DNA from: Epithemia pelagica
Taxonomy: Eukaryota > Protista > Bacillariophyta
DNA length: 64,000 nt
Direction of reading: 5' to 3'
NCBI GenBank assembly: GCA_946965045.2
Contig: OX337237.1
Span: forward strand, 806,001-870,000
Notes under the pieces: generated by a model
Told to the model about the DNA's origin: nothing
Database searches by the model: none
Seen by the model: only the letters and a program-made list of their open reading frames with translations
In this document: one piece after another, positions 32,731 through 60,275 of the stretch
Layout of the letters: each line of letters opens with the position of its first letter
Position numbering within the stretch: position 1 is the first letter of the stretch
Program-made: the position numbers and the translations under genes

Positions 32731-35424
32731 ATGGATCCTGCTGGAAAAGAGAAACGTGATGAGAAACAAGAAACAAGAACTACAGAGATTGAGGATCAGG
32801 ATGGAGAGAGTACCGGCGAGAAGGAGCACACCAACGGAAATCAAAAGCTTCCAAAACGTCCAGTCGGTTTCTCTCATGCAGACGGCAACAAGGAGACGAG
32901 TCTAGATGACAGGGTCCCCTTGGCAACCAACGGAAAGACTTCGCCGCCGTTGTCAGTATCTCCTCCTCCTCCTCTTACTACAAGAAAGGAAACGGCAAAT
33001 GCTCCGACTGATCCGAACGTCGCAGCCACACCGTTTGCCCCCAGTCCACGAGAAGCAGCTTCGTCATCGCCGTCATCGCCTCGTACAGCAAGTACGAAGG
33101 TGCCAGCTCCTTTGGAACGAGCCCCCTTGGGTGGATTGGTGGTTGTCTTGCCAGGAGCCTTTCGATATTCCCTCCGAAATGATGGTCGTCGACAAGGACA
33201 ACGACGGCCTCCCTTGCACCGAAGTTATTGGGCACAGGAGGAGCGTGAGGAAGGAGCGACACGCAAATTGGCCCTGAGCAACCTACATCATGACGAAGCA
33301 TCAATTGGTTCCATTGAGGACGATGAAGTAGCAACCGGCGATAGGGATACTAGGGTCCAGGCCGTTCCGCAGCACGACGACGACATGGAAGCATCGTATC
33401 TTGTTTCGGCCACCTTGGTCGACGACACCCACAACACTACTACTGCTACAGCGAGGGACAACAATAGTGACATGGAACAAGCACTGGTGGATGATTGGCA
33501 TTCACTCCCCTTGGTAGATGCCAGGACTTTACCGACGACCCAGGACAGCCGTTTGGAAACACGCGGCGGAACCACCCATGAGGCATCTGCATCCGCACGT
33601 CAAGATTCTTTCTCGTTGACTCGCAGGAGTGTTGTTGATGGAGGACTGGAGGTTTCTGAACAGGTGCCACAACAGTCTCCCAGTGCTCGGAAACATTGTT
33701 TCAGGAAACGAGGGGGGGAAACGAGCCTTGTCGATAGGATTCCTGCTTCTTGCCATGATAGCGGTGGTTGTCGTGGTCGTTGGTTTGACGACCAATGGTT
33801 GGGGGAACAGAGGAGACAGTGGTACAAGTGAATCCAATGGGAGGAACGAGACTGAACCAGCATCCCCTCCGACGTTGCCTCCCAAAACGACGGCTCCGAC
33901 GATCAGTACAGAACCTTCCCTCCCACCATCTACGGCTCCCAGTTCCAGACCCTCGTCGAGTCTGACCCCATCCACAACACCCACCACTTCCTCCAAACCG
34001 TCCTTTCACCCACGAGATCTGTATCGCAAATTGAACTCATGTTGCGAACGAATCACGCACAAGTGTTTGAAACAGGAGAAAACAAACCCTATCATACCAC
34101 GACGAATCTGCCTATTGGATGAAAGCCTTGCGCTATGTCGACGAGACGTCTGGAGTGGAGAATTGTGCAACGCTATGCCTTGGCCTGTATCTATTACGCT
34201 ACCAATGGTGTTGAAACACAGTATTATATCCAACATTATAGAAATGATGAGAATGACACGTCTTCTGTCGTGGAATGGGAATTTCCTTGGGCAGACCGAG
34301 CTGGCACAATCAATGAATGCAATTGGTATGGGGTACAATGCGAAATTGTGGATGACAGTTTGACTTTTGCCCTGGGGGAAGGTCAAGTCATTGCAATTGA
34401 TCTCTCCACGAGAAGCGGTATCGGTATCACGGGCACCTTTCCCATGGAAGTGATTTTATTGAAAGAAACGTTGGAAGTGATTGCGCTCTCAAACAATCCA
34501 GTGTCCAACAATGGTTGGGAATGGTTGGGTGAATTGACTCAATTGCAAACCTTACGTGTTGACAATACTGGCTTTGGATACGACCAAGGTCTTCCAACCG
34601 AGCTAGGAATATTGACCAACCTTGAAACTCTTGATTTATCCAACTCGTGGTTCACGGGTCGGTTGAATGCCTCAACGGTATTTTCCAACTTGTCGAAACT
34701 CCGAACTCTGTCCCTCGAAGGACTGGAGAACTTGACCCATGCCCACACGGTGTTGGACTATGTGCCCACATTTCGCGATCTCCGATTCTTGACACTCAGC
34801 CACATTTCGTTCCAAACAGAAATTTCTCTCAATCTATTCGACCTTCCTCAGCTCCAGGAGCTGTCCATGAGCCACGCCGATCTGACTGGAAATTTGGACG
34901 TCCTATTTAACTACAGTGCGTCGATCGAGTCTTTCCACACCAATCTTCGAGTTCTCGAGCTTTCCCACAATCCCAATCTCGGCGGCACACTCCCAAGTGT
35001 GATTGGTCAGCTTTCGCAGTTGAAAACTTTGGACTTGGCCCATTGTGGATTGACAGGCTTTATTCCGTCTGAATTGAAGTCGGTTGTCCTACTGGATGAG
35101 TTGCGATTGGACCACAATGCATTGAATGGAAGTTTTCCATTCCATTTGATGAGCAATGGGTTGTTGTCGACTGTATCGCTCCAGAACAATAACTTGACGG
35201 GAGGACTGGAACCCATGTTGGGAAAGGAAAGCATGGATGGATATTTCTATGTATTGGACATACTGGACCTGGACAATAATGTGTTCTTGGGTGGGACGAT
35301 CCCGAGTTCCATTGGTCTTTATACAAGCCTGGACCGACTAGGACTGTCCAATTGCGGTTTGACAGGCTCGATACCATCGCACATTGGCTTGATTTTGTCC
35401 ATGATGCCTACTCGGGAATACTAG
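32731..35424 (+). pseudogene. Type-II membrane LRR receptor-like gene (LRR3), frameshifted and 3'-truncated
   Basis: PGAFRY, YLVSATLVDD and LPLVDARTL motifs. +1 shift at the G7 run near 33712 before the TM, more shifts at 34010-34150, then LRRs that end without the C-cap. Confidence 0.8.
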
Positions 35425-35624: not shown

Positions 35625-36905
35625 CTACCCTTCCTTGCGATCCAGACTGCTGGTCGCATCGACTTGGGCGGAAATGGCGCCCCCTCCATACACAGTGACA
35701 TGACTGGCGGTCCTGACTGTTCCTGTTCCGTGAGTGTCAATGTGAATCTCGGCATCAGAGGCCGTATTCACCACAAAGTCTCCCTCATGAGACTGAAACT
35801 CTTGGGCCTGCAACTGACTTGCCTCCGAAACCATGGTGGTCATCATCGCACTCGTGGTTGCTGCTACGATGCCCGCCACTGACGTTGGTTTCAAGGTCAC
35901 TTGGCTCCCGCCGCGTACCGTCACCGACGTGTGTTCAATCCTTTTGATCGATTCTCCCAACTCAATATCGGCATGACTTCCCTCCGATACCAGAATATTC
36001 AATTCATCCATGGAAGAATCGTCGCCTTCATCTTCTTGGACGAGAGCAGGACTTGTCGTCGTCGTCGTCAACAATGATGTGTCGGGTGTCATGACCAGTT
36101 GTGATCCTTCCTGCACTTGCAGATGCACCGTCCGGGCCAAGGCCACCCGCAAGGAAACTTTCAACTCACTGCCCTGTCGTACCTCCATGGACGACACTTG
36201 AGGGAGACGAAAGTGGACCCGAAAGGTTGCATCGCAATATGTTCCCGATTTGAGTATGGCTACCAAACTGTCCTGATTAGTACCAAGACGTTCCACTGTC
36301 AACCGATCCACCAAGTTATCATCCACTTGCAACACAACTGCATACTCTTTATCATCCTGTTCTCCCGGGAGGCTTAGTTCGGCCGACAAGCCCGTTTGGA
36401 TGGAAACTCCGGAATAATAGTCCTTTTGGGAGTAGGAAGGATCCAGAGCCGCAATATCGACGGGAACATGAACAATATTCCCCGAACCTCGGTATTGACA
36501 GGGATCAGACCAAAAAGGAGCAAGTCCAATGGGTCCCCACAACACAAACAAGACGAGCGCAATGACTGGAACGACAAGGAAGCAATCGTTTGGATGGAAC
36601 GTACAAGGGGGAGGAGTAGGAGGAGGAGGAACGCCCACATCAGCATTAGCGATTTCTTCATCATTGGATGGATGATGGCTTGTCGCAAGGAGTGGTTCCA
36701 CGTCGTCCTGGTCCTTTTGGGGTGGCTCCTCCATCATGCCCCCGATACAGATCCCAGAGAGACACACCATGTGCAGTAGCTCGTCCTTCGAGGTCACTTT
36801 CGCCGTTGCGCCACTCTTCTTTTCCATGGTGTCCTTGTCCTTGTTTGGTGGCTTCTCCTCCATGCTAAGATACAGAACCCCGAGAGACAAACAATATGTG
36901 CGCAA
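35625..36905 (-). CDS. Type-II membrane protein with a DUF2807 / GIN (adhesin head)-like repeat domain (likely ATG 36863)
   Basis: TM CFLVVPVIALVLFVLWGPIGL; RGSGNIV; VLQVDDNLVDRLTVE; repeating (V/I)xxGS/ASxV units (EGSQLV, EGSHADI, GGSQV, EASQL, TASDA, TASHV). Confidence 0.6.
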   Translation of the reverse strand: MRTYCLSLGVLYLSMEEKPPNKDKDTMEKKSGATAKVTSKDELLHMVCLSGICIGGMMEEPPQKDQDDVEPLLATSHHPSNDEEIANADVGVPPPPTPPPCTFHPNDCFLVVPVIALVLFVLWGPIGLAPFWSDPCQYRGSGNIVHVPVDIAALDPSYSQKDYYSGVSIQTGLSAELSLPGEQDDKEYAVVLQVDDNLVDRLTVERLGTNQDSLVAILKSGTYCDATFRVHFRLPQVSSMEVRQGSELKVSLRVALARTVHLQVQEGSQLVMTPDTSLLTTTTTSPALVQEDEGDDSSMDELNILVSEGSHADIELGESIKRIEHTSVTVRGGSQVTLKPTSVAGIVAATTSAMMTTMVSEASQLQAQEFQSHEGDFVVNTASDAEIHIDTHGTGTVRTASHVTVYGGGAISAQVDATSSLDRKEG

Positions 36906-38233: not shown

Positions 38234-41200
38234 ATGAGCAACGAGGAGGACGGCACGAATGAGACGCCACGACTTGACCCATCTTCCCAAACGACAGAAC
38301 CAGTCAACTGGGACAAAGAAGAAGATTCCAAGGATTCCGCCAAATCGATGATCCAGCATGAGCAAGGCGACGACGACGACAATGACAAGAAGAATAAGAA
38401 GCAGACAATTCATGATGCCGTCCATCCTGAACCACTCCCAAATTTGACTTGTTTGGAAAGCGACAGTTTGTCCGAAACCAAAGAAACCACCAATAGTGGC
38501 TATTCTACAAAAATGAGCAAGATCCACACGCCAAAGACCACCAGTAATCATCTTGGAACAAAAGAGAGAAACAGCAGCGACAACAGCAACACAATCGAAC
38601 CATCTGATGGGACGATGCCTCACCAAGAGCAGTCTTCTCCTCCTAGTTCCAGGAGTAAGGATACTACCAATGATTCACGTCCTGTTTCTCTTGCGGACAA
38701 CAAGGACACGATAGTTACCGACAATGGCGTGTCCGCTCCATCGGTTTCTACTACGGCTTTTCACAACGACGACGAAGAAACGACCAGCACTCGTTTGGAT
38801 GCACCACCGTTCTTGCCCGCTCCGACGACGCTCCATCCAAACCCTGCACTTCGACCGACGGCTACACCGGGTGCCTTTGTTTATTCTCCCCGCCAACGGC
38901 ATGGAGCACGACGTCCGCCATTGGATTATTCGTCGTCGTCCTTGTGGTTGGGCGGAGAATGTGGTGCTGGTGTTGCTGGTAAGCCACATTGTTGCAAAAA
39001 GAACAAGACAAGGATGAAGGAAGGGCAAGTTGTTCCAACTCTTTTTGTACACGACAATGATGACTCCGCGAGCAGTCATACGGAACAAACGGGTGACGAC
39101 GACTTGCGGAGAGCGCCACCACCACCACCACTAGGATGGAACACCCACAACTCCCACCACACAACAAATGGTGATGGTTCGGAGACATTGGACAATGACA
39201 TTTATGTCGTGTCGGCAACCTTGGTCGACGAACATTCGAGGCCCAGCCGCACGAGGAGCACTGCTCCTAGCATGGTAGATGATCATTACTTGTTGCCCTT
39301 GGTCGATGCATGGACCTTGACCAATGATGAATCGCCGAGTACCAGAAATACTCCTACAACGATTCGGTTCCGAAACATGACGCAGCACCCGCAACAAAAA
39401 GAAGAGGCAGGAGCATCCACCAATGTCGAACAAGCAATCGACCGACGACCCAAGCACTATCGGGGATGCTGGCAGTTGTCTCCTATCCAAACGAATCTCC
39501 TGGATTGGATGCTGCCTGCTCCTTGTTCTTTTTATGATTGCTGTAATTGTCATTGTGAGTGTTCTTCTTCTTGGGGCAGCATCCACCCCTACTGGAAGTA
39601 GTAGTACGGATGAACCAGCAGGCATGGCGACAACCCAACCTGGTGGTCCTCCTACCCAGTCCTCCGTTCCGCCCTCTACCACTGGTACACCCAGTATCCA
39701 ACCGTCCTTCAGTGTGGTACCAACAACGACCCCAACCACTTCCTCCAATCCCTCCCTTTCGCCCACGCGATCGGTATCGGCAATCGAACTCATGTTGCGA
39801 ACCAATCACCCCCAAGTGTTTGAAACAGAAGAAAAGCAGCGAACGTTTACATTTCCTGACGAATCTGCCTATTGGATGAAAGCCTTGCGCTATGTCGAAG
39901 CGACCTCTACGGAAATGGAGGAGTGGAGAATTGTGCAACGCTATGCCTTGGCCTGTATCTATTATGCCACCAATGGTGTTGAAACACCGCACTATATCGA
40001 ACATTACAGGAATGATGAGAATGACACGTCTGTCATGGAATGGGAATTTCCATGGGCGGATCAAGCTGGCACAATCAATGAATGTACTTGGTATGGGGTG
40101 CAATGCGAAATTGTTGTGGATGACAATTCGGCATTTGGCCCACTTGTAAGTCCCGTTGTCCATTTAGCCTTTGGCAGCCAAGGGATGACGGGCACCTTCC
40201 CCATGGAAGTGATTTTATTGAAAGAAACGTTGACATGGTTATTCATCGATGACAATCCAATCTCAAATTTTGGACTGGAAAACCTTTGGTGGTTGGGTGA
40301 ACTAACCCAATTGGAAAGACTTGGACTCTCTGGTAGTGGGTTTGGCTATGATCAAGGTTTGCCATTGGAGTTGGGATTCTTGACCAATCTCAAAAGACTT
40401 CGTTTGGTGAATTCTGATTTCACCGGTTCATTAGATGCCACTTCCATTTTTCAAAACATGTCTCACCTCGAGCGGCTCGTTCTGTCGGGATTGAACTTGA
40501 CCCAGGCCAATACATTGTTCGCCGTTCTTCCGTCGTTGTCTCAGCTAACGAGTTTGACCTTGCGCGATATTCCGCTTCAGGCAAACTTGTCCTTTCGACT
40601 ATCGGATCTTCCCAATCTCCAATCACTTAATATACGGAAAGCACATTTGACCGGAAATTTGGACGTTTTGTTCGCTACTGACGACTTGCCTGAATCTTTT
40701 TCCTCCACGCTTAACACTCTCATTCTTTCGAACCATCCCAATCTTAGTGGAGGCCTTCCAAGAACTATTGGACGTTTCTCACTGCTAAGAAGCTTGGATT
40801 TGAGGAATTGTGGTCTCTCAGGACAACTTCCTTCTGAATTGGCATTGCTTGATGAGCTACAATGTGTCGAATTCCGAAACAATGCATTCACCGGAACGAT
40901 TCCATCCCATCTAGGGAAGCATGTAACATCTTTGGCTCTGCAAAACAATAACTTGACGGGTGGCTTGAATCCTCTCTTTGATCGTGACAGCGCTCTTGGG
41001 GATTCGAACGAGCTGAAGAACCTGAACCTTTCAAACAATGCCTTTTTGGGTGGTACCATACCAACCACGGTCAGCCTCTTTCCCAAACTTGTGGATCTAG
41101 AGCTGGAAAATTGTGGCTTGACGGGTCCCATCCCCACCCAAATTGGTCTCCTACGTGCTCTGAGGTCGATGCCTCTGAACGACAATTTACTAAACGGAAC

Positions 41201-41417
41201 TATACCCACGGAACTAGGCGATCTACTGGTGTTGCAACATGTACAATTGCACAATAATGATCTGAACGGTCCTCTTCCGGATACCTTGTGTCGTCAATGG
41301 GACGTTCGAGAGGAACCAGTCCTCTCCTTTACATTGGATTGCTCGACGCTGCTATTGGAAAACGCGACGATGACATCGTGTGAAGAGGCGAATTCTTGCT
41401 GTACTCTCTGTTACTGA
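38234..41417 (+). pseudogene. Type-II membrane LRR receptor-like gene (LRR4) with a single +1 frame break just before the TM (about 39450-39490)
   Basis: The N-terminal frame carries PGAFVY, YVVSATLVDE and LPLVDAWTL. The frame of ORF 39423-41417 carries the TM, stalk, LRRNT, complete LRRs and CCTLCY*. May be an unrecognised intron or a sequencing error. Confidence 0.75.
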
Positions 41418-46461: not shown

Positions 46462-49400
46462 CTAATCTGGTCGTCGTCGTTGCCGTGTGGAAGTGGGGTG
46501 CTGTGAGGCAGTGTCATGCACAGCTTGTGAATAATGTGTACGGCCATAATGGTCTTGTACTTGTGTGAGTGTCACAATCGGTTCTTCGTACGGTGGTGGC
46601 ATGGTTTGATGCGAATCATGGGATCCATCCCACAACGAAGGACCAGCAGGTGGTGGTGGTGGTGGCATGGAATGCATAGTGTATGGCTGGCCCTCCAAAT
46701 AATCGGCCCAGCCTTGATCTTGATGCTCATCCGGCTGCGTTCGATGTTGAAGTTCGGCTTGAGCTTGGCTCTGTCGTTCCGGAGACATGTAGTGGAGCAT
46801 ATTGTACCGTTTCAAAATGTGGAATTCAAAACAACACAGTTCCAAATCGGGTTGCGTCGAAAAATCCACATTCATGGGATCCTGGTACAAGGATTCGTGT
46901 TGTACATTGTGGTTGGTGGATCCACCACCAGGATAGGATGACGACGACGTGGAGGGACAATCAAAGCCACCATAGCAAAAGGCGGAACATTCCATGACTC
47001 GAATGACCGCCACCGCATCGAGCAGTAACACGTGGTCGCGAAACAAGAGTCGTGCATGGGCCTGGGAGAGACGAATCAGAGATTCCAAAAACCGGACCGT
47101 CACGGGAATGGTGCGACTTTGGGATCCTCGACACGCTTCGTAATGACGTTCCAGCAATAAGGCGGCTTCGTCACTCAGAACCGGAAAGAGCGTGTCCCGG
47201 ACAATGGAAATATACGCCCGCAACTTTTCCATGGACCAGGGTTCGGGGACAAAGGGTGATGACATGGAACTTCCATCTCCATTGGACTGTGGTAGCAGTG
47301 GAGTCCCATCATCCGAGGGGCCTGTTCCTTGAATGGCTTGGTTGAGCAGATAGGTGGTGATATTGTCGTCTCGTGTCGCATCGGACGAATCGACCAGCTT
47401 GAGAATGATATCAAATCTGGACAAGAGTGGTGTACCGAGACCAGTATTGACCGACAAACTACATTGGTTATCATACAGGCAATCGCGTGGATTCATGACG
47501 GCAATAATGGTGGCGCGACAATTGAGTTTGCATACAATACCAGCCTTGGCTACGGACAAGTGTTGTTGTTCCATGGCTTCATGAATCGTTAACCGATCTT
47601 GATCTCGGATACATCCAAATTCATCAATACAACACACGCCTTGATCGGCCAAGACGAGGGCACCGGCTTCCAAGGCAAATTCGCCACTGCTCCCATGTCG
47701 TACGGCGGCGCAGGTCAAGCCGGCCGAGGTGGTTCCCACTCCCGTCGTGAGAACGGCACGAGGACTCAGGGCGGCGGCAAACCGCAAAAATTGAGACTTG
47801 CCCGTTCCCGGATCTCCCACCAATAACAAATGAGATTGCGACCGCCGACGTGTATAGACTTGGGCATTGGAACGATGGTTTGGTGTTTGACGAGGTGCCG
47901 TGGGAAGGTGATTGGTCATTTGACTGGAATGTTCTTGTTGGTGATGTTGTTGCTGTGATGGTGGCTGCGCATCGTCTTCCACACCCGTACGAGTGGTGTT
48001 GGTGTTGTGGCGCCGACGTTTGGGTGGCTGGTTGTTATTGTCGTTGGCGTACAGGCTGTTGTAATCGAGTCCTGGTTCTTGAGACAAGGATGAATGGTTC
48101 TTGGGATGACGTCGTGGAATGACAAACAAGTCTTGGTGTTGTTGATGTTGTTGTTGTTGGTCGGTTTCTCTTGTATTTTCCTTATCCTCCGTCATTCCAT
48201 CAATAATAGGGTCGGTCTCTTGCATTATGTTGTCTATATTGCTATTGTGCGAAGAGTCGGACGACACTCCCCCAATCAATGTCAAGAGCAAGGCCAATTT
48301 AATCATGGGCAAACCGTACAGTTTGGGACAAACGGCCCGACAAATAAAATCACGAGCCGCAATGGGACGAGGGACTTGCAGTTGCCAATACCGTTCAAAT
48401 TCGGCTTGATAACGTTTGGTATCTTCGGTATGGGCATGATTGGTTGCCACGGCCGTGATCGAGGAGGAGGACGACGACGCGCCTGCGGTCGAGGAGGCTC
48501 GAGGATCGTCACTCAAAACCAGAATGGAATGCGCCAAGAGGGCCAATCCAATGTCGGGTTCGGGGACGTTGCGGACACTGGGAGGAGGACCCTGCGCTTG
48601 TTGTTGCTTGCCATTGTGCTTGTGGCTGCCACGACGAGGATTCATGGAATGGGTGGCCACATCGGAGTGCCATTGGGCCAACAAACTCCCGACAATCACG
48701 ACTTGATCGCCGGGTTGACAGGTATCGACCAAATCGTGTTGCAATTTGACCACGAGCGATCGAGGAATGTGTCCCAATTCTTGGTTCGAGCTATTGTTGT
48801 TGTGGTGGTTGGACGATTCTTGAATTTTGAGTTCTTGATAATCGGTATGAATGGACCCGACACTGGGATCCAAGGCGACCAAATTGGTACCACGGCAGGG
48901 TACTTTGGTCGGTGGTGCATTTGGAGTAGTTGTATTGGTGGTGGTGGTCCACAGGGGACAAACCTCGGGGGGTGTCAAGGCATTGTTGACATGTCCGAGA
49001 TTGGCATGGACGACAAAGGTTTTGCCGCATCCACAACTCGAACTGTCTTGTTTCTTTTTTGTTTTCCAACCTCCTCTTCGGCCACCGCCACCACCGTTGC
49101 TCGAGTCGGTGTTGTTGTTACCGCTCGTATTCTTCTTGGTATTATTCGTATTGGTGGGTTGACAGAGATAGGTGCGGGTGGATTCGTACATTTGAATGGG
49201 AGAGGCCCGTACGACGGTACCGGCGACTTGCCACATTTGACCAACATCGCGCGCTTGCAATCGCGACAGGGACGATTTGAAGCGGGAGGGTGGCAATTGG
49301 ACCAATCGCGCATGCAACCGGGTCGTATTATTTGGATTGCTGGTACTGGTGGTAGTGGATGGATGGTGGGTGCCGGACAATCCCCCCTTGACGGACGCGG

Positions 49401-50363
49401 TGGCCCAATTCACGGGTGGACCATCCTCCTCCTCAGTATCCTCATTGGTGTTGTTGTTGTTGTTGTTGGTGCCAGAGGTTTGTTGTTCCTGACGCTTTTG
49501 GTCCAATAAATCTTGCTGAGCTCGCACCAAGGCCTTTTCCAAGACGGGTACCAAGGTTGCTATATATTCGTCGTAATCACCGTCATCATCATCAGTATAT
49601 TATGCAATGGAGTATCGGATGGGAAATCGTACCGAATCGCAACATTAGGTAGTAGTAGAGAGTAATAGAATAGAACGAACCAAACGAAAACAAGATGGAG
49701 GTGTGAGCCATTCTTGCCATTTTGTACCAAAACGACACACACAAACATACATACGGGCCACTGACGGTCCAGTCCAACGAATCGGTTCCAGTCGAAAAAA
49801 ACTCTTTCGTTTTTTTATTCGAACCAGAAACCGCGACACCAAAACCTGCCGGCACAACCACCACAAGAACTCGAACGACTCCTACTCCAAACGAACGAAT
49901 AAACAAACGAATCGTACTGTTGTGTATACGTACCCGGATATCGGAGCAGCAAATCGCCCAAGACGGGATGATGTTGCAAGATATCGTAGGATCGGACTTG
50001 AATGGAATAATCACGCGTGGTGGTGGGTTGCCGCAACAAGTGGAACACGGCTTGGCGAATCGTGGGACAAGCGAGGCACGTTTCATAAAACGAATCTTCC
50101 ACGTGACTGGGACTGCCCAAATCCTTGTACGACGCCTGTTGCAAAACGGGACCCGTCCAACCACTTGTCGTGTCGTTGTTGTTCTCGGGAGGACGCGTTG
50201 AAAAGGAGGAGGGTTGTGGTGGCCCTTGGATTCCACCCATCACCGGATGGCGACAAGAACGAGGATAATCTTCATCTTCGTCTTCCTCTTCCTCGTTTCC
50301 ATAATCGTTCATGGCAGGATCGTCGTCATAGTCCGAAGGAGGACCGTCTGAAAAGTGGTCCAT
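46462..50363 (-). CDS. MCM9: MCM9-like helicase; 2 exons (intron 49560-49933)
   Basis: DYQELKIQE, LLLVGDPGTGKSQFL, TTGVGTTSAGLT, LEAGALVLADQGVCCIDEF, IHEAMEQQ, LLSRFD, TVRFLESLIRLSQAHARL. Splice CCG G|gtacgt...tatag|CA ACC keeps the frame. Confidence 0.88.
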
Positions 50364-51016: not shown

Positions 51017-51929
51017 ATGGGAAACACATTGGCTCGCCAATTTCAAGACGCGCCCTTGGGACAGGGTCATTTGACGTCGACGCAGGCCGCTCGTCAAACC
51101 GCCTTGGTACCCGATGCCGTCGTCTTGCATACCTATTCGCCCCGGACCTTGTGGGTCCACAAACAGGCCAAATCATCGTCCAATAGGCATCGCATTCGAT
51201 TTGTCCATGCCGAAACGTCCAATCTCCTCTTTGTCAACAGCACTACCACCACCAGTAATTCCATGACCACCACGACCACCAAGGATTTCAAGGGTCAATT
51301 GCTCTTTGTCACCAAGGCTCCCCACAAGGATTTGCGCGTCATTTACAAGGTCCTAGAACAACCGGCAGCACCGGAAGGAACGGCACCGTCCGAAGCATCG
51401 TCCTCGAATATGGAAGACGAACCCGATCATGCCAATCCCAATCACAACAATCACAAAAAGCAACCAGACGACTACCAAGATGGATGGACCCCCGTGGCCA
51501 AGATTGAAATTGATCACGTGGCAGCCTGTTTGACCGCCTTTCTCAGTGTCAAACGAGACACTCCTCCAAAAGGCCAAACTCCCACACCCCAAGAAACCAA
51601 CCACGAGAACCACGACGAGTGCGTCGTCGGGTTCCGTCGCTTCCAATGCATCCTCGTCGTCCAAGAATTCTCACAAAAAGGCCAAATCATCCTCCCCCAA
51701 ATCACAACCCGACCACCAGAATGACTTATTGTATGTCGATGTCTACAAGGCGGTCAAAATTCCCACCGTCCCCTACGGTGTCATGGTCGTGGATTTGACC
51801 ACGGGACAAGTCGTGGGCAAATCCGAACTCGACACGACCAAAAACAAGTGTCCCAAATTACTGGTCGCACCCGGGGCCGATGCCACGGCCGTGGCGGCCT
51901 TGACGTGTGTCTTGCATGGTGAATTGTGA
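51017..51929 (+). CDS. Possible LURP-one/Tubby-C (scramblase-fold) protein, with a frame break or intron near 51550-51700
   Basis: MGNT start (possible myristoylation). The C-terminal LLVAPGADATAVAALTCVL resembles the LURP1 terminal strand-helix. The two halves lie in different frames. Confidence 0.4.
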
Positions 51930-52210
51930 AACAAAAAGCAAAAAGCAACCAACCACACGAAACGTGTGACCACAATAAAGGAAGAAGAAAGTAGAGGACA
52001 GATTGGAACAACCCCACATCGTAACCAAAGCAAACAAGCCAACCATCACAAACCACACACACACCAACCAAAACTCGCCAGGAGGAGAGACAACGCCAAC
52101 ACACACAGACACTCTAGAAACTCCCACCACACAAGACAAACACCAGATGGACCAAAACTCGCCAGGAGGAGACAAGAGCAATCACAAAACGAAACTACAA
52201 AGGACCATTA

Positions 52211-52640
52211 CCATGACCAAGTGTGTGTGTGCATTCTCCATTTGGCAAAAAGCTAGTGTTGCGAAAAAGAAGAAGAAGAAGAGAAACACCCTCCAAAGCC
52301 CAAAAGAGCGTTTGTGTACACTGTTCATCCTGACGGCTACAAACCACACACGCGCAAACACACACACAAGAAACCATGGACCGAAACGAGACAGGAGCAA
52401 GCAAAAGAAGAATCTTGTGTGTGTGTCTCGTAACCAACGAAACGTGTGCACCGTTCCGACGAGAAAGTAGAAAGGATAACCACCACCACCAATGGGTTAC
52501 ACACACATGCGGACATGTGTGTGTGTGTGTGTGTGTGCATTCTTCATTGGCAAAAAGCTAGTGTTGCGAAAATGAAGAAAAAAAGGAAGAAACACCCTCC
52601 ACAGCCCCAGGAGCTTTTGTGTACACTGTTCATCCGGACG
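52211..52640. repeat. Two copies of a ~125-bp direct repeat with (GT)n and (GAA)n tracts
   Basis: gtgtgtgcattct...ggcaaaaagctagtgttgcgaaaa...aaacaccctcca...ttgtgtacactgttcatcc occurs at about 52220 and 52525. Confidence 0.8.
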
Positions 52641-53242
52641 ATTCTCTCCATTCTTATGTTTGATGGGGGTGTAGGTTTTATTTGGTTTGTGGAATCTCAG
52701 AGAGGCACGCAAGAAGAAGAATGGGCCCAATGTCGAATAATAGAGTGTAGTATGGGATTGGTGGAAGCGAGAGCACACCACGTTTCCGACCATTACAGTT
52801 ACGGGAGAAACGACGACGACGACCACCAAGACGCACCAAGAACGACGACAAGTGTCTCCTATTTCTACTGTATCTACCTCTCTACTAGAGTATGATGATG
52901 GAGAGAATCTATACACAAATTGGACGGAAATATCTCCCAGATAGGATAGGTTTCCTTCGAATGTCCCTTCTTCTTTCACTGAAGGTAGCCCCATCCTCTT
53001 GACAAACAGAGAGAGAATCGTAAGGCTCCTACTTCTTAACCCGGATATAGGTAGCACTGCTCGACAGAGGCCGCCCGTCGACCGTATATCACAAAAGGCC
53101 TCATCTCCAGGTTTTGATGTGAACTCCACACTTGAGTGGAGGCGCTGGCCAGCCAGCTTTTGTATTCGAATCCCCACGTGAAGTATCACTCTTGACAACG
53201 AGACTACGAAACAACCCTCCTTCGTAGCCATAGCGACTTACC

Positions 53243-56026
53243 ATGTTGTTGTCCAATACTAACCCACAGTCCAGAGTTGTTGGACATGACGACGCTGTGC
53301 CTGTGAAATGGCCAAGACTAATCAAGGTTTTTGAAGAACACGGGTGGCGCTTGGATCGCATATCAGGAAGTCATTTTATCTTTGTCAAGTCTGGTCACCG
53401 CTCCATTCCACTGGCGTTCCACGGCAACAGATCACTCACGAAAAAGTACGTCAAGTTGGTTCTGAAACAGGCGGATATCGTCGGCGATGTAGTAGCCGAA
53501 GATGAAGAATCTTACGAAGACGCCACCCCCCAAGTTATGGATGTCACCGATCCACCAAATGAAGGAGCTGCTGCTGTGAGACTAACAAAAAGGGTCGTCC
53601 CAATCCCTGACTCCAAGTGTTTGACCCACACCACCTCTCTCGATAAAGATGAATGGAGAAAACAGCACCAGACACAGCGTGTGGAGGTTTCGAAAGAGAT
53701 ATTACGACGGGAATCGCTCCTCGAGTCTGTCCAGTGCTTGGTAGCCGAAGGAAACTTTGCGCAGGCCTTGGCCTCCATTGAGAGCGAAAAACTCGATCTC
53801 GTTGACACTTCAGATAAGAATTACGAGGAGTTTTCCTCAAATCTATTCTTCTTCAAGATTATTGCCAAGATGGAGCTTGCTCTATCATATCCACTAAACT
53901 CGCCGCAACAGCGCGAGGGCATCATTGCGACGCTCAATCTTTCGAGTCGATACATGGAGGCAGTGCGAGATAGACGCCACCAAGCTCGAGAGCTTGCCAT
54001 GGGCCTACAAGCAAGGGTAATGAAGCTATATGTGCAAGAGGCGACAGAAGCGTCAAGAAAGTGCATGGCAGTGATTTTGCGTCGAGACCTTCCCACCAAT
54101 CACGCACTTCTCGATTTCTTTCCAAATGAAGGAGTCTCCAGTTCACGAGAGTTTGTGTTTTCTCAACTCGATGTCATGCTTGAATGTCTTCATTTCATCG
54201 TATCCATGTACAAGCTTGTTCTGAGCCAACCATTTGATTCCGTGAAAACAGTAGAACTGGCGGAAGAGGTTGAAGTGGCAACGTTGGTTTCACCCTGCAT
54301 TACCAGAATGCTTCTGTTGTTTAGCATGGAAAACTTTGATGCCGCAACGCAAGCGGCCGACAGCTTGCTCTTCGTGGCAGAGCACTTTCAAGAAGGAATC
54401 ACCATGATATGGCCCTTTGGTCCGAGAAAGGCATGGATTACAAAATCCCTGATCATTTCTATTTCAGAACATGTCAAGGCATTGGCCCCAGTATACCACT
54501 TTGCGAAAGAGGAGCTGAAATGGAGCCGTCTCGCAGGAGTGGTTGCCCGATGCAATGAGGCAGAAGATGTGGAAGAGTTGGAGACAAGGTTTCGGAGAGG
54601 TGCATTTTGCCTTTCCAGTGCCCTTACGTTCACGCAGAGAGCTCTCGACGTCATGGCAACTCATCGAAATGGTACAGAAGAGTTGATCGTTTCTACTTCA
54701 ACGAGAACGTTTATGTTCGATTCGCTGTTGGATCCAATCGAATTGCTGGGAGCCTCAGTGGATGAGTTCATGGCAACTGACCCCGTTGGAATGAAGCTGA
54801 ATGAGGTGAAGAAGTGGATTTCGACGCCAGGCCATGAACATATTGATGTATACATCAAGAAACATCAGGGCCCATGTAACCTCAGAGAATTCAGGACAGG
54901 GAAGTATGATCACCTTCGCCGTCAGCTGCTGCTGATCTTACGATATCTTCACCAAATCTCGGATGTTTACGCAACCTACTGTGATCACCTTGACACGGAG
55001 TCTCGGAAGGAGATGGAAGGCAACAAAATTTACACAAAGCATCGATTCGAAAGAATCAACTCAATCCGCTACGATCTTGTGTTCTTGTTCAGTATTCTTT
55101 TTGATAATGCCTCCCAAACCACAGCTTGGATGTTTGCTTATAAAGCCTTGGTTATCTTCTCGAGTGATCTGGATGTTTCGCATCGCTTTCACACGGAAAC
55201 ACCAAGCAAGCTACGTGGTCCGTGTGAGACGAAAGAAGAAATGTATGAACTTGGTGTGTGGGCTTTTGACCACGCGTTCAAGACGTACTCTCCGCTCTTT
55301 CTTCGTCGATACGTGATTGAAACAGAGGCGCGACGCCTGTGCGTCATTCGAGGAATCATTGGTCCCTTCCCCAGCTCATTCATGCCTGACCACCAAGGGG
55401 AAGCATTGGAAGCAATGGCTTTTTCATTGTTGTCCCAAGTCCTAAAGCGGTAAGGACGCAACATTCCGCAGTCATTTGTTCGAACAGTCCTACAAGATAT
55501 GATACAAACCCCTGACATGACGTCTGAGTCTCGCAGGTGGATCAAGAGCAAGGCAAAACGATACACCGAAAAAGTGCGCAGGTTTCAAAAACTAACGTGT
55601 GAGGAGGAAGCGAAGCTGAACTCCTGTTTGGCTTCAAGAAAGACAGCCATAGGTATATTGATGGAGAAACTTGAGGACAGCACGATGAAGCGCCGACGCC
55701 TTCCGTCAGATGTCTCCGAGAGAGTGTCGGCTTGTGCTGACCACAAAGAAAGGGTTCGTCTTGTCACTGCAAACTGCCACATGATTCGCCAGTGGTCTGC
55801 TGAAGATGCGACTGAGGTCGATCGGGCAATGTGGGCGTTGCAGGATTCCGCGGAAGTTGCGACCAGCTTTTTGCACCTGGCTCTTGGCTACCCAAAGGTA
55901 TCTAGCTTGTCAAGCCCTTCGTGGTCTCTCTCGGAATCTCAGACTTCCTTAAGTGACAATGTTCAGAATGACATTACCTGTCTGCAAAAAATCTTTGAAA
56001 AGGCGAATGCGCTGTTGGATGATTGA
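53243..56026 (+). CDS. Large alpha-helical protein with an N-terminal HicA-like mRNA interferase domain; in-frame TAA at 55451-55453
   Basis: aa 21-79 VKWPRLIKVFEEHGWRLDRISGSHFIFVKSGHRSIPLAFHGNRSLTKKYVKLVLKQADI match the HicA pattern. The 736-aa ORF and ORF 55499-56026 share a frame, separated only by this TAA. Confidence 0.75.
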
Positions 56027-56142
56027 GTTGAGGCGCGAGACCGCACTCGAACATATCAAAATAATTGTTACATGCAGCTTGGTCTGCGACTTTTGCCATG
56101 TAGCGCGACTTCCTTCGATTTCTAGAATATGTAATGTCTCTT

Positions 56143-56640
56143 TCAGTAAATGACAATCGCGATAGGATATCTTCCGGTCAGTAAAGGAAGGCCTTCCTCG
56201 AAAGCGATAGAAATAACAGGTGAATCCCTGTTGAGAATGTTGTCGATAGAACCAGTGGTATCAAATCTACCGGTGCATACCACGCCCGACCAATCGCATT
56301 GGCGGACAGTACTCGCCCTGTCTGCCCATGAAACCGCTGCATCCCATTCTAGGACAGATGTCTCATTTTCATTCATAAAGTTTTCAACATAGTACGGGGT
56401 CGAAACATCGTTAGTGGCATAGTAGATACATGCCAAGGCATACCGTTGCGCTATTCTCCACTCCTCCATCTCTGAGGATGTCTCCTCCACAAAGCGTAGC
56501 GCTATCATCCAATACGCTGACTCGTCATTGAAGTTTTGTTCATAATCCTCTGGGTAATTGGTGCGCAACATTACTTCCATGGCCGAAACACATCGAGTGG
56601 GCAATAGAGAGGGTTCGGAGGAAGTGGAAGGCAGCGTGGG
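56143..56640 (-). pseudogene. LRR receptor fragment (stalk + LRRNT), array copy 1
   Basis: MEVMLRTNYPE..WRIAQRYALACIYYATN..CDWSGVVC; 1-bp deletion at IVI(L)LKET. Confidence 0.8.
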
Positions 56641-57442
56641 GGGTATACCTCACTGGTTGACGGCAATTCGCTGGGAACAGCCGAGAAGGAAGGCTACTGA
56701 CTTGATGATGGTATCTTACTGGCGAGAACAATCGGCGTTCTGGATCCACTGTAAGGCACGGGCGAGAAGAATGGGTAACTACTCGAGGGAATCTGGTAAG
56801 ACACCGTACACAATGGGCAACGTATGCATGGTATGTCCAACCTTCCAATCCACACCTCCGTTTTAGGCCAGAATAATAAGTACGTCTTGTTTCCCCCACA
56901 CGCTACGAACTAACACTGTAGCAGAACTCTCATTGAAGAAAGACAGCCATAGGTATATTGATGGAGAAACTTGAGGACAGCACGATGAAGCGCCGACGCC
57001 TTCCGTCAGATGTCTCCGAGAGAGTGTCGGCTTGTGCTGACCACAAAGAAAGGGTTCGTCTTGTCACTGCAAACTGCCACATGATTCGCCAGTGGTCTGC
57101 TGAAGATGCGACTGAGGTCGATCGGGCAATGTGGGCGTTGCAGGATTCCGCGGAAGTTGCGACCAGCTTTTTGCACCTGGCTCTTGGCTACCCAAAGGTA
57201 TCTAGCTTGTCAAGCCCTTCGTGGTCTCTCTCGGAATCTCAGACTTCCTTAAGTGACAATGTTCAGAATGACATTACCTGTCTGCAAAAAATCTTTGAAA
57301 AGGCGAATGCGCTGTTGGATGATTGAGTTGAGGCGCGAGACCGCACTCGAACATATCAAAATAATTGTTACATGCAGCTTGGTCTGCGACTTTTGCCATG
57401 TAGCGGGACTTCCTTCGATTTCTAGAATATGTAATGTCTCTT

Positions 57443-57940
57443 TCAGTAAATGACAATCGCGATAGGATATCTTCCGGTCAGTAAAGGAAGGCCTTCCTCG
57501 AAAGCGATAGAAATAAGAGGTGAATCCCTGTTGAGAATGTTGTCGATAGAACCAGTGGTATCAAATCTACCGGTGCATACCACGCCCGACCAATCGCATT
57601 GGCGGACAGTACTCGCCCTGTCTGCCCATGAAACCGCTGCATCCCATTCTAGGACAGATGTCTCATTTTCATTCATAAAGTTTTCAACATAGTACGGGGT
57701 CGAAACATCGTTAGTGGCATAGTAGATACATGCCAAGGCATACCGTTGCGCTATTCTCCACTCCTCCATCTCTGAGGATGTCTCCTCCACAAAGCGTAGC
57801 GCTATCATCCAATACGCTGACTCGTCATTGAAGTTTTGTTCATAATCCTCTGGGTAATTGGTGCGCAACATTACTTCCATGGCCGAAACACATCGAGTGG
57901 GCAATAGAGAGGGTTCGGAGGAAGTGGAAGGCAGCGTGGG
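57443..57940 (-). pseudogene. LRR receptor fragment, array copy 2
   Basis: Identical to copy 1 except D(S)PLISI versus D(S)PVISI. Confidence 0.8.
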
Positions 57941-58742
57941 GGGTATACCTCACTGGTTGACGGCAATTCGCTGGGAACAGCCGAGAAGGAAGGCTACTGA
58001 CTTGATGATGGTATCTTACTGGCGAGAACAATCGGCGTTCTGGATCCACTGTAAGGCACGGGCGAGAAGAATGGGTAACTACTCGAGGGAATCTGGTAAG
58101 ACACCGTACACAATGGGCAACGTATGCATGGTATGTCCAACCTTCCAATCCACACCTCCGTTTTAGGCCAGAATAATAAGTACGTCTTGTTTCCCCCACA
58201 CGCTACGAACTAACACTGTAGCAGAACTCTCATTGAAGAAAGACAGCCATATGTATATTGATGGAGAAACTTGAGGACAGCACGATGAAGCGCCGACGCC
58301 TTCCGTCAGATGTCTCCGAGAGAGTGTCGGCTTGTGCTGACCACAAAGAAAGGGTTCGTCTTGTCACTGCAAACTGCCACATGATTCGCCAGTGGTCTGC
58401 TGAAGATGCGACTGAGGTCGATCGGGCAATGTGGGCGTTGCAGGATTCCGCGGAAGTTGCGACCAGCTTTTTGCACCTGGCTCTTGGCTACCCAAAGGTA
58501 TCTAGCTTGTCAAGCCCTTCGTGGTCTCTCTCGGAATCTCAGACTTCCTTAAGTGACAATGTTCAGAATGACATTACCTGTCTGCAAAAAATCTTTGAAA
58601 AGGCGAATGCGCTGTTGGATGATTGAGTTGAGGCGCGAGACCGCACTCGAACATATCAAAATAATTGTTACATGCAGCTTGGTCTGCGACTTTTGCCATG
58701 TAGCGGGACTTCCTTCGATTTCTAGAATATGTAATGTCTCTT

Positions 58743-59240
58743 TCAGTAAATGACAATCGCGATAGGATATCTTCCGGTCAGTAAAGGAAGGCCTTCCTCG
58801 AAAGCGATAGAAATAACAGGTGAATCCCTGTTGAGAATGTTGTCGATAGAACCAGTGGTATCAAATCTACCGGTGCATACCACGCCCGACCAATCGCATT
58901 GGCGGACAGTACTCGCCCTGTCTGCCCATGAAACCGCTGCATCCCATTCTAGGACAGATGTCTCATTTTCATTCATAAAGTTTTCAACATAGTACGGGGT
59001 CGAAACATCGTTAGTGGCATAGTAGATACATGCCAAGGCATACCGTTGCGCTATTCTCCACTCCTCCATCTCTGAGGATGTCTCCTCCACAAAGCGTAGC
59101 GCTATCATCCAATACGCTGACTCGTCATTGAAGTTTTGTTCATAATCCTCTGGGTAATTGGTGCGCAACATTACTTCCATGGCCGAAACACATCGAGTGG
59201 GCGATAGAGAGGGTTCGGAGGAAGTGGAAGGCAGCGTGGG
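58743..59240 (-). pseudogene. LRR receptor fragment, array copy 3
   Basis: Near-identical to copies 1 and 2. Confidence 0.8.
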
Positions 59241-59533
59241 GGGTATACCTCACTGGTTGACGGCAATTCGCTGGGAACAGCCGAGAAGGAAGGCTACTGA
59301 CTTGATGATGGTATCTTACTGGCGAGAACAATCGGCGTTCTGGATCCACTGTAAGGCACGGGCGAGAAGAATGGGTAACTACTCGAGGGAATCTGGTAAG
59401 ACACCGTACACAATGGGCAACGTATGCATGGTATGTCCAACCTTCCAATCCACACCTCCGTTTTAGGCCAGAATAATAAGTACGTCTTGTTTCCCCCACA
59501 CGCTACGAACTAACACTGTAGCAGAACTTTCAT

Positions 59534-60275
59534 TGAGAATTCAGAAGGGTAATAGGTAGTTGGGTAAAAGGCTCGCTGAGCCGACAATCGAATCACCAAC
59601 CGATACAACAATCCTCCACGGGTCAGAGAAGAGTTGCAAGTCAAAGTCCGCCGTGGGTGGGGGCAGTCGGTCCACTGATAAGAGGTTAGTCTTAAGATGA
59701 GTGTTAAAATGGTGATATTAATGATTGTGAGATGATTACTAACTAAGGTGTTTGATGAAGGTCGAGGTCCTGGCTCTTGTATACGGCCATGGATCTGGTG
59801 TGATAGGTCCTCAAATGGTTGGAGTAGACCTGCATTGTTGTATTGAAAGTATATGCAGTTGTATATCATATACCAATGCCAACAGCTCTTGCTTTGTTGT
59901 GATATAGGTAGTTTTCTTGGCGCGTTGTTGATTGCATTCTTGGAATTGTGGGAAAGGAAATATGGTCTCGCGTGATCGTGATTCGTGCTTTGATTACTTA
60001 GGTCGTTGAGGTAAGTCGTGGAGGTGCTCACTCGGATCGTGATTGCGCGCGCTTGAGAATATTGGGCGCGCACGTGATGGGCCATAGTCAATATCCGAGC
60101 GGTCGCCGATAGCGCGTGCATTGCGAGCATGCCTTGGCCAAAATTATAGGTCCGCGAGCATGCCGTCGTTCTTTTCTCACTTTTACACAAATGTCATCGG
60201 ATGCCATAAAATACTAGCATCAGTTGATGTGTTGTAGATTCCACCACCACCTAGTTAAAGGTGAGAATCCTAACA
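59534..60275 (-). repeat. Putative 3' LTR (about 742 bp)
   Basis: On the minus strand a PPT-like GTGGGGAG (60276-60283) is followed by TGTTAGG...; the segment ends ...GAATTCTCA at 59534, where the tandem-array sequence stops. The second LTR is not visible, so the boundary is unconfirmed. Confidence 0.65.

Follow-up and report, generated by a model that had tools for sequence, protein, structure and literature searches.

The genome of the diatom Epithemia pelagica contains a gene that raises a simple question: what does a bacterial toxin do as part of a eukaryotic protein, and what keeps it in check there? The gene lies in the window analysed here, a 64,000-nt stretch of contig OX337237.1 (positions 806,001 to 870,000 of the forward strand, assembly GCA_946965045.2), and its product starts with a domain resembling HicA, the RNase toxin of bacterial HicAB toxin-antitoxin systems, and continues into a long helical region. 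We refer to it as the HicA-solenoid gene. It was first noticed by inspection of the window sequence, and the 736-aa open reading frame (ORF) with a HicA domain followed by helical sequence, claimed in that original prediction, is present as described.

The profile search identified a match to the Pfam family HicA_toxin (PF07927) that spans residues 23-79 of the protein and the entire length of the profile (positions 1-58/58), with an E-value of 5e-12 and a score of 46.1 bits when the whole protein was used (49.6 bits with residues 1-100 alone), against a gathering cut-off of 27 bits. In a six-frame search of the genome with the same profile two candidates were scored, and the gene in the window (50.4 bits) was the sole match at E<=0.001. 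Comparison with the sequences of solved structures by phmmer reported the HicAs 5yrz_B, 6g26_E and 4c26_A (E ~6e-3). The AlphaFold2 (AF2) model of residues 1-100, for which 11 eukaryotic HicA sequences were aligned with 25 bacterial ones, exhibits a helix (23-32), three strands (36-41, 44-48 and 55-58) and a second helix (67-76), with a per-residue confidence (pLDDT) of 83-96 in the core. A Foldseek search of PDB with this model returned HicA structures or the HicA-like Thermus protein 1whz as the top 7 matches (root-mean-square deviation (rmsd) 1.6-3.6 Å), with 6g26 as the best one (template-modelling (TM) score by target 0.81-0.84, rmsd 1.6 Å, 30% identity). The HicA pattern that the original prediction had read at residues 21-79 is therefore borne out by both a profile match above the cut-off and a modelled HicA fold, and the hallmarks that it had named, the G-S-H and HG motifs and the LKQA helix at the end of the domain, are all present.

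The Gly22-Ser-His24 segment of the Burkholderia toxin (4c26 is its H24A mutant) aligns with Gly42-Ser43-His44 of the diatom protein. The residues needed for the toxicity or RNase activity of bacterial HicAs include Gly22/His24 in BpsHicA, His28 in YpHicA3, His36 in StpHicA and His23 in EcHicA, and the catalytic His of HicA is masked by HicB (PMC11594946). Fifteen columns of the HicA domain are invariant in the 11 eukaryotic sequences; W35, R39, I40, G42, H44 and H60 are also invariant in the bacterial HicAs aligned with them, and the copy in the window (hereafter allele A) keeps every family-invariant residue. Mean pairwise identity in the family is 57% for the HicA domain, 25-34% for the helical body and 16% for the linker between them. 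The invariance of G42, H44 and the other columns while the body diverges points to long-term selection on the putative nuclease site, beyond selection on the fold alone. Altogether, sequence and model confirm a genuine bacterial-type HicA domain that retains the catalytic-type Gly and His.

The fusion extends beyond E. pelagica. A profile of the helical body only, without the HicA columns, was searched against 1.84 billion representatives and retrieved 57 clusters, 37 of them at E<=1e-10 and 19 at E<=1e-30. Of ten full-length members tested (737-1004 aa), nine have an N-terminal HicA_toxin domain above the Pfam cut-off, as do three short N-terminal fragments. Named sources of family members are Attheya sp. 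CCMP212 (EukProt) and an MMETSP transcript, and metagenome contigs provide genomic copies, with a single-exon 953-aa gene that adjoins a gene with a diatom-typical HA domain. Intact natural members comprise 945-1004 aa (e.g. P0068, P0013 and P0012). P0027 (929 aa, from a Logan contig) has the full body and no HicA match, and its N-terminal remnants resemble the GSH and LRQA segments, a pattern that suggests secondary loss of the nuclease domain. A survey of diatoms for the same fusion had been proposed together with the original prediction, and the search with the body profile indicates that the HicA-solenoid fusion is a conserved, uncharacterised diatom family. The impression that no such fusion had been characterised agrees with a survey of HicA genetic contexts, whose 14 classes are all prokaryotic and include no like context (Gerdes 2024, mBio; PMC10865869), and our literature searches turned up no paper on a HicA from diatoms or any other eukaryote. 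Six-frame searches of the whole 60.5-Mb genome with the HicB profiles PF15919 and PF05534 gave 0 matches; the lack of a HicB-like ORF near the gene, as first claimed, is upheld and holds genome-wide. Word-index searches with the HicA domain only and with residues 12-90 returned only the gene's own alleles, which reflects a limit of the tool and is not evidence of absence.

As to the origin of the domain, motif-guided scans of prokaryotic genomes revealed 125 HicA relatives, stand-alone proteins of ~60 aa with up to 59% identity. A maximum-likelihood tree built from 40 bacterial HicA domains and 11 eukaryotic ones groups the latter in a single clade (100/99) among the bacterial HicAs; a comparison of this kind had been called for in the original prediction. 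The sister of this clade (97/91) is a HicA from a Spirochaetota metagenome-assembled genome, the gene for which overlaps a gene encoding a HicB with a helix-turn-helix domain, in a textbook hicAB operon. We derive from the tree that the HicA domain was probably acquired from bacteria in a single event; we claim no donor lineage, because the alignment has 64 columns only and the bacterial sequences were pre-selected by similarity.

The architecture of the remaining part of the protein was predicted from the intact 964-aa orthologue P0003, which is 42% identical to the window protein and was modelled by AF2 with a 31-row family alignment (mean pLDDT 78.9, pTM 0.74). The model comprises the HicA domain (residues 32-87), a disordered segment (100-138) and an all-helical region (140-963) with a disordered loop (733-747) that precedes the last helical domain; the helical region of ~650 aa after HicA that the original prediction had described in the window protein is accounted for in this way. 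From the model, we call the body an alpha-solenoid of the tetratricopeptide repeat (TPR)-like type. The segment right after HicA is net acidic in 11/11 members examined (-2 to -10), with a sequence that is not conserved, and the HicA domain in the same 11 members is basic (+4 to +12). This combination fits, and hints at, a role of the linker in masking the domain or mimicking RNA.

Searches with the body returned mostly generic similarities. It has no match in Pfam or PADLOC; the PADLOC defence models did not match P0003, P0001 or the C-terminal piece, and the NCBIfam models gave no meaningful match. Foldseek comparison of the full model with PDB reported no match at E<=0.001 (best E>=0.04), and the weak matches to the body are generic ribonucleoprotein (RNP) or scaffold solenoids (eIF3, spliceosome, SKI3). 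The VIA fold search with the full model reached Z<=10 to designed repeats and to the TPR protein BamD, below the meaningful level for helical repeats. A relation of the body to the HEPN RNase Las1 (VIA Z ~7) was considered and rejected, as the score is at noise level and the sole R-x6-H motif of P0003 (R579-H586) is lost in the window protein. Similarity in the ESM Atlas feature search to TPR-like eukaryotic clusters (0.75-0.80) was likewise discarded as being at chance level. By shape, the nearest ESM Atlas model was a 554-aa cluster annotated as "YcfA family" (TM 0.11/0.17); this cluster is bacterial, mostly cyanobacterial, carries HicA_toxin in 98% of cases and may represent another long HicA fusion.

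With moderate confidence, we consider the following to be the best explanation of these data. The family protein consists of a HicA-type endoribonuclease domain at the N terminus, probably obtained from bacteria in a single event, an acidic disordered linker and an alpha-solenoid of ~820 aa, the last part of which is a separable helical domain. The HicA domain would be an active RNase, cleaving RNA like bacterial HicAs and needing no ribosome for it, and the solenoid, the acidic linker or both would hold it back or direct it in cis, because free HicA arrests bacterial growth and HicB is absent. Such an arrangement would be similar to that of toxin-antitoxin proteins fused into a single chain. 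The most plausible role of such a protein would be in stress or conflict, e.g. antiviral RNA cleavage. At the locus in the window the gene is impaired, as allele A ends at codon 737 with its C-terminal domain lost and the allele on the second haplotype (allele B, see below) is frameshifted and partly deleted.

This proposal can be compared with several known systems. The diatom domain shares with the canonical HicAB toxins (B. pseudomallei 6G26/4C26 and S. pneumoniae 5YRZ) the Pfam family, the fold (TM 0.81-0.84) and the Gly-x-His motif, and differs from them in being eukaryotic and nuclear and in forming the N-terminal 8% of a protein of ~930-960 aa. In contrast to a type II HicAB system, the diatom gene has no adjacent HicB and is not in an operon. 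Among prokaryotes, monocistronic HicA fusions make up classes 11-13 (HicA+HicB) and 14 (SMC-HicA), and a logic of restraint in cis was proposed for such fused HicAs by analogy to CapRel (PMC10865869). In these fusions, too, HicA is joined in one polypeptide to a bigger partner, which is helical in part and presumed to keep it under control; however, the diatom partner resembles neither HicB (hhalign probability of 0.1 for the body profile against a HicB sequence) nor SMC, and HicA is C-terminal in the class 13 and 14 proteins, whereas it is N-terminal in the diatom protein. Since HicB is neither adjacent nor fused and SMC is missing, the diatom gene is, as judged from its sequence, neither a HicAB system nor any of the 14 described prokaryotic HicA contexts. 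CapRel(SJ46) serves us as a working analogy only: it has an N-terminal toxic enzyme and a C-terminal region, and in the diatom protein the latter would similarly inhibit and sense, but the folds and the chemistry of the two proteins are unrelated. Among eukaryotic proteins, RNase L combines ankyrin repeats with a KEN/HEPN domain, and SMG6 combines a helical region with a PIN domain. They have the design in common with the diatom protein, i.e. a small toxin-type nuclease with a large repeat or helical module; however, their nucleases belong to HEPN or PIN, not to HicA, and they exhibit no sequence or fold relation to the diatom body.

What remains of this architecture at the locus itself depends on the in-frame TAA that ends allele A. 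Residues 19-953 of P0003 align colinearly with the window frame across the TAA, the stop being the sole interruption, and therefore we reconstruct an ancestral gene of ~927 codons. The TAA maps just past the helix that follows the loop 733-747 of P0003. It is not an assembly error, because the unitig that spans it (54771-55548) exhibits 0 differences in 4 runs from 3 samples. The single TAA with a further 190 in-frame codons behind it, as the original prediction had it, is present with the open frame ending at 56026, and these codons are colinear with the C-terminal domain of the intact relatives. According to the alignment, allele A thus lacks, because of the stop, a C-terminal helical domain of ~190 aa that is conserved in the family. 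Breaks were also observed in two other members: the MMETSP transcript L095 (P0018, a distant member) changes frame at nt ~2294-2323, about residue 730 of the orthologue, and past this point is colinear with full-length relatives for 211-213 aligned residues, and L098, a variant of another member recovered from a metagenome, lacks one nucleotide at nt 2029 of the gene (about residue 695). The idea of a hotspot at orthologue residues 695-766, with 3 independent breaks within ~70 residues, was rejected as post hoc, and fragment pairs suggest splits elsewhere; the three breaks just before the C-terminal domain could be due to chance or ascertainment bias.

A contig from another assembly, L002, contains the same gene between the same neighbours, with flanks that are 93.2% identical over 8 kb. 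Both forms occur in the same samples at similar depth (~70 versus 62 in X1) and the contigs of the long-read-like runs add up to ~120 Mb, as against 60.5 Mb for the genome, hence we regard L002 as the second haplotype of a diploid. In it, the segment with the whole gene is inverted, with no inverted repeats at its borders, and a protein search of the genome assembly found no second full copy of the gene. In allele B the reading frame of the HicA domain shifts between Trp35 and Arg39, and a stretch corresponding to window positions 54838-55471 (~640 bp) is deleted. Comparison of the two alleles over the N-terminal 512 codons yielded a ratio of non-synonymous to synonymous divergence (dN/dS) of 0.54 with dS of 0.20; the corresponding values are 0.13 and 0.077 for the neighbouring MCM gene and 0.72 and 0.071 for the neighbouring ORF 51017-51724. 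The synonymous divergence of the inverted segment is ~2.6x that of the flanking genes (0.07-0.08), and an old inversion polymorphism, suppressed recombination or balancing selection are possible reasons for it.

The 3' end of the gene is contained in a tandem repeat, in each unit of which the last 134 codons of the HicA-solenoid gene are accompanied by a 153-aa ORF on the minus strand (56143-56604 and 57443-57904); the DNA depth of the repeat is ~2.6x that of single-copy sequence. The 153-aa ORF exhibits a weak LRRNT-like Cys/Trp motif, and the other haplotype lacks 700 bp of this region (56102-56801), over which the depth in run X3 is almost nil. This run has depth 0 at 56284-56651, where the DNA runs are deepest, and covers both alleles, unspliced across 54771-55548 and ending at ~56142. 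The kind of library is not on record for X3; it is probably RNA, because the adjacent repeat DNA is uncovered, and expression of the locus is likely on this ground.

Several observations weigh against the favoured explanation. Allele A is truncated and allele B is clearly broken; the gene at this locus is truncated or decaying, which speaks against an effector encoded here. When P0003 is used as the outgroup, amino-acid changes turn out to be equally frequent in the two alleles (21 versus 19), though allele B is dead, so that allele A is not visibly more constrained than allele B, and the dN/dS of 0.54 makes recent selection between the alleles look relaxed. In another species, two intact natural variants exhibit 16 non-synonymous versus 6 synonymous differences and one nucleotide is deleted in a third copy, and the MMETSP transcript contains the frame break described above. 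The immediate neighbours (MCM, ORFs without family matches, and repeats) do not form a defence cluster. The role that we assign to the body is a guess, because this part has no informative homologue or specific fold relative, and the docking of the HicA domain against the body scored 0.00, a result that counts as evidence neither way. The old rearranged haplotypes, the loss-of-function alleles, the 16:6 counts and the break in the transcript fit a role in conflict or stress without proving it, and the same signs fit relaxed constraint equally well.

One alternative is that the locus is a decaying pseudogene without present function, whatever the family does elsewhere. We regard this as an evenly balanced matter. 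The premature TAA cuts off a conserved domain, allele B has lost the frame of HicA and part of the body, the two alleles have changed at equal amino-acid rates, the dN/dS is 0.54, and an inversion and a tandem triplication of the 3' end have rearranged the locus; nonetheless, allele A retains 736 uninterrupted codons with the invariant HicA residues intact, the dN/dS is below 1, and the probable RNA run covers both alleles up to ~56142. A pseudogene at this locus is compatible with the explanation that we favour for the family.

A different reading of the family itself is that HicA has been retained as a non-catalytic RNA-binding module, resembling a double-stranded RNA-binding domain (dsRBD), which would tether a helical scaffold to RNA or RNP in ordinary RNA metabolism. 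The dsRBD-like fold and the strongly basic character of the domain agree with this, as do the generic RNP and scaffold solenoids among the weak matches to the body and housekeeping surroundings such as MCM. However, the Gly and His that are invariant among members only 25-40% identical elsewhere are the residues of toxicity and catalysis, not of folding, and in a housekeeping factor, damage on both haplotypes or near-neutral ratios of non-synonymous to synonymous differences would be unexpected. We find this reading unlikely.

To a bypass of the TAA by an intron, programmed read-through or recoding, with a protein of ~926 aa still made from allele A, we give very little credence. The stop lies within GGTAAGG, which resembles a splice donor, the 190 codons downstream are open and homologous to the family, and breaks occur nearby in two other lineages (about orthologue residues 695 and 730); however, the protein alignment is colinear through the stop, leaving nothing to remove, the contigs of the probable RNA run are unspliced over 54771-55548, and the other breaks are of a different kind, namely 1-nt indels. 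An intron starting at the TAA (GT at 55450) was tried and rejected, as no acceptor restores the frame at a plausible intron size.

Finally, a fusion created by bacterial contamination or a chimeric join in the assembly, which might be suspected as HicA is otherwise prokaryotic and has only one match in this genome, is so unlikely as to be negligible: the ORF is continuous and has the local G+C content, a single unitig (52297-53881, at the depth of the flanks in 4 runs) joins the upstream intergenic DNA to the HicA domain, the second haplotype with its syntenic flanks (93% identity) has the same fusion between the same neighbours, and the fusion recurs in other diatom transcriptomes and in metagenome contigs. 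The join, a check of which had been advised when the gene was first noticed, is consequently very unlikely to be an artefact.

The location of the gene is nuclear, ~860 kb into a large contig. Analysis of the genomic neighborhood found no neighbour gene that is conserved across the loci of other family members. Upstream of the HicA-solenoid gene lies a low-complexity CA/TG-rich tract (52200-52550), in which the second haplotype differs by skips of 368 bp and 99 bp. Farther upstream, the window contains two proteins with leucine-rich repeats (Pfam LRR_4, LRR_8 and LRR_14; 34135-35421 and 39423-41414, 12-19 kb from the gene) and a DUF2807-like ORF on the minus strand (35628-36905). The coordinates of the main features are collected in Table 1.

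Table 1. Features of the HicA-solenoid gene and its surroundings in the window (positions are those of the window; aa, residues of the window protein).
Feature	Position	Strand	Remarks
MCM helicase gene	46462-49554	-	immediate neighbour of the HicA-solenoid gene
Segment with the whole gene	53231..56101	.	inverted relative to both flanks in L002 (9893-12131); 85.6-88.7% identity
ORF, allele A of the HicA-solenoid gene	53243..55453	+	736 codons + TAA; single exon
HicA_toxin domain, aa 23-79	53309..53479	+	predicted alpha-beta-beta-beta-alpha dsRBD-like fold; Pfam, AF2, Foldseek
Gly42-Ser43-His44, catalytic-type motif	53366..53374	+	alignment to BpsHicA Gly22/His24
His60-Gly61 in strand 3	53420..53425	+	His60 invariant among the diatom and bacterial HicAs aligned
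Linker, predicted to be disordered, net acidic	53480..53635	+	net charge -7 over a 39-residue core
Alpha-solenoid (TPR-like) body, aa ~132-736 (predicted)	53636..55450	+	AF2 of the orthologue; family profile search; generic fold matches
In-frame TAA	55451..55453	+	interrupts an ancestral frame of ~927 codons; ~residue 765 of P0003
190 in-frame codons behind the TAA	55454..56026	+	homologous to the C-terminal helical domain of the family; ancestral stop 56024-56026
Tandem repeat	55624..59550	.	3 copies of a 1300-bp unit, 99-100% identity

As regards the biology of the family, the boldest version of the explanation that we favour would be that a HicA domesticated by diatoms acts as a single-chain innate-immune RNase, in which the solenoid senses a viral or stress cue and releases the nuclease; we put this forward as an unlikely speculation. 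If it were true, the released nuclease would shut down translation, amounting to abortive infection or programmed cell death, and a locus of an immune-like kind would be expected to have old, structurally different haplotypes (here the inversion, with dS of 0.20 versus 0.07 in the flanks), loss-of-function alleles and near-neutral ratios of non-synonymous to synonymous differences. The intact natural members make the idea directly testable, and the locus in the window is of less value for this purpose because both of its alleles are damaged. Few toxin nucleases are known to have been reused by eukaryotes, among them PIN and HEPN, and HicA would be added to these. With the catalytic motif retained, HicB lost and a solenoid of 820 aa gained, this conserved eukaryotic family provides a natural experiment in taming a toxin without its antitoxin.

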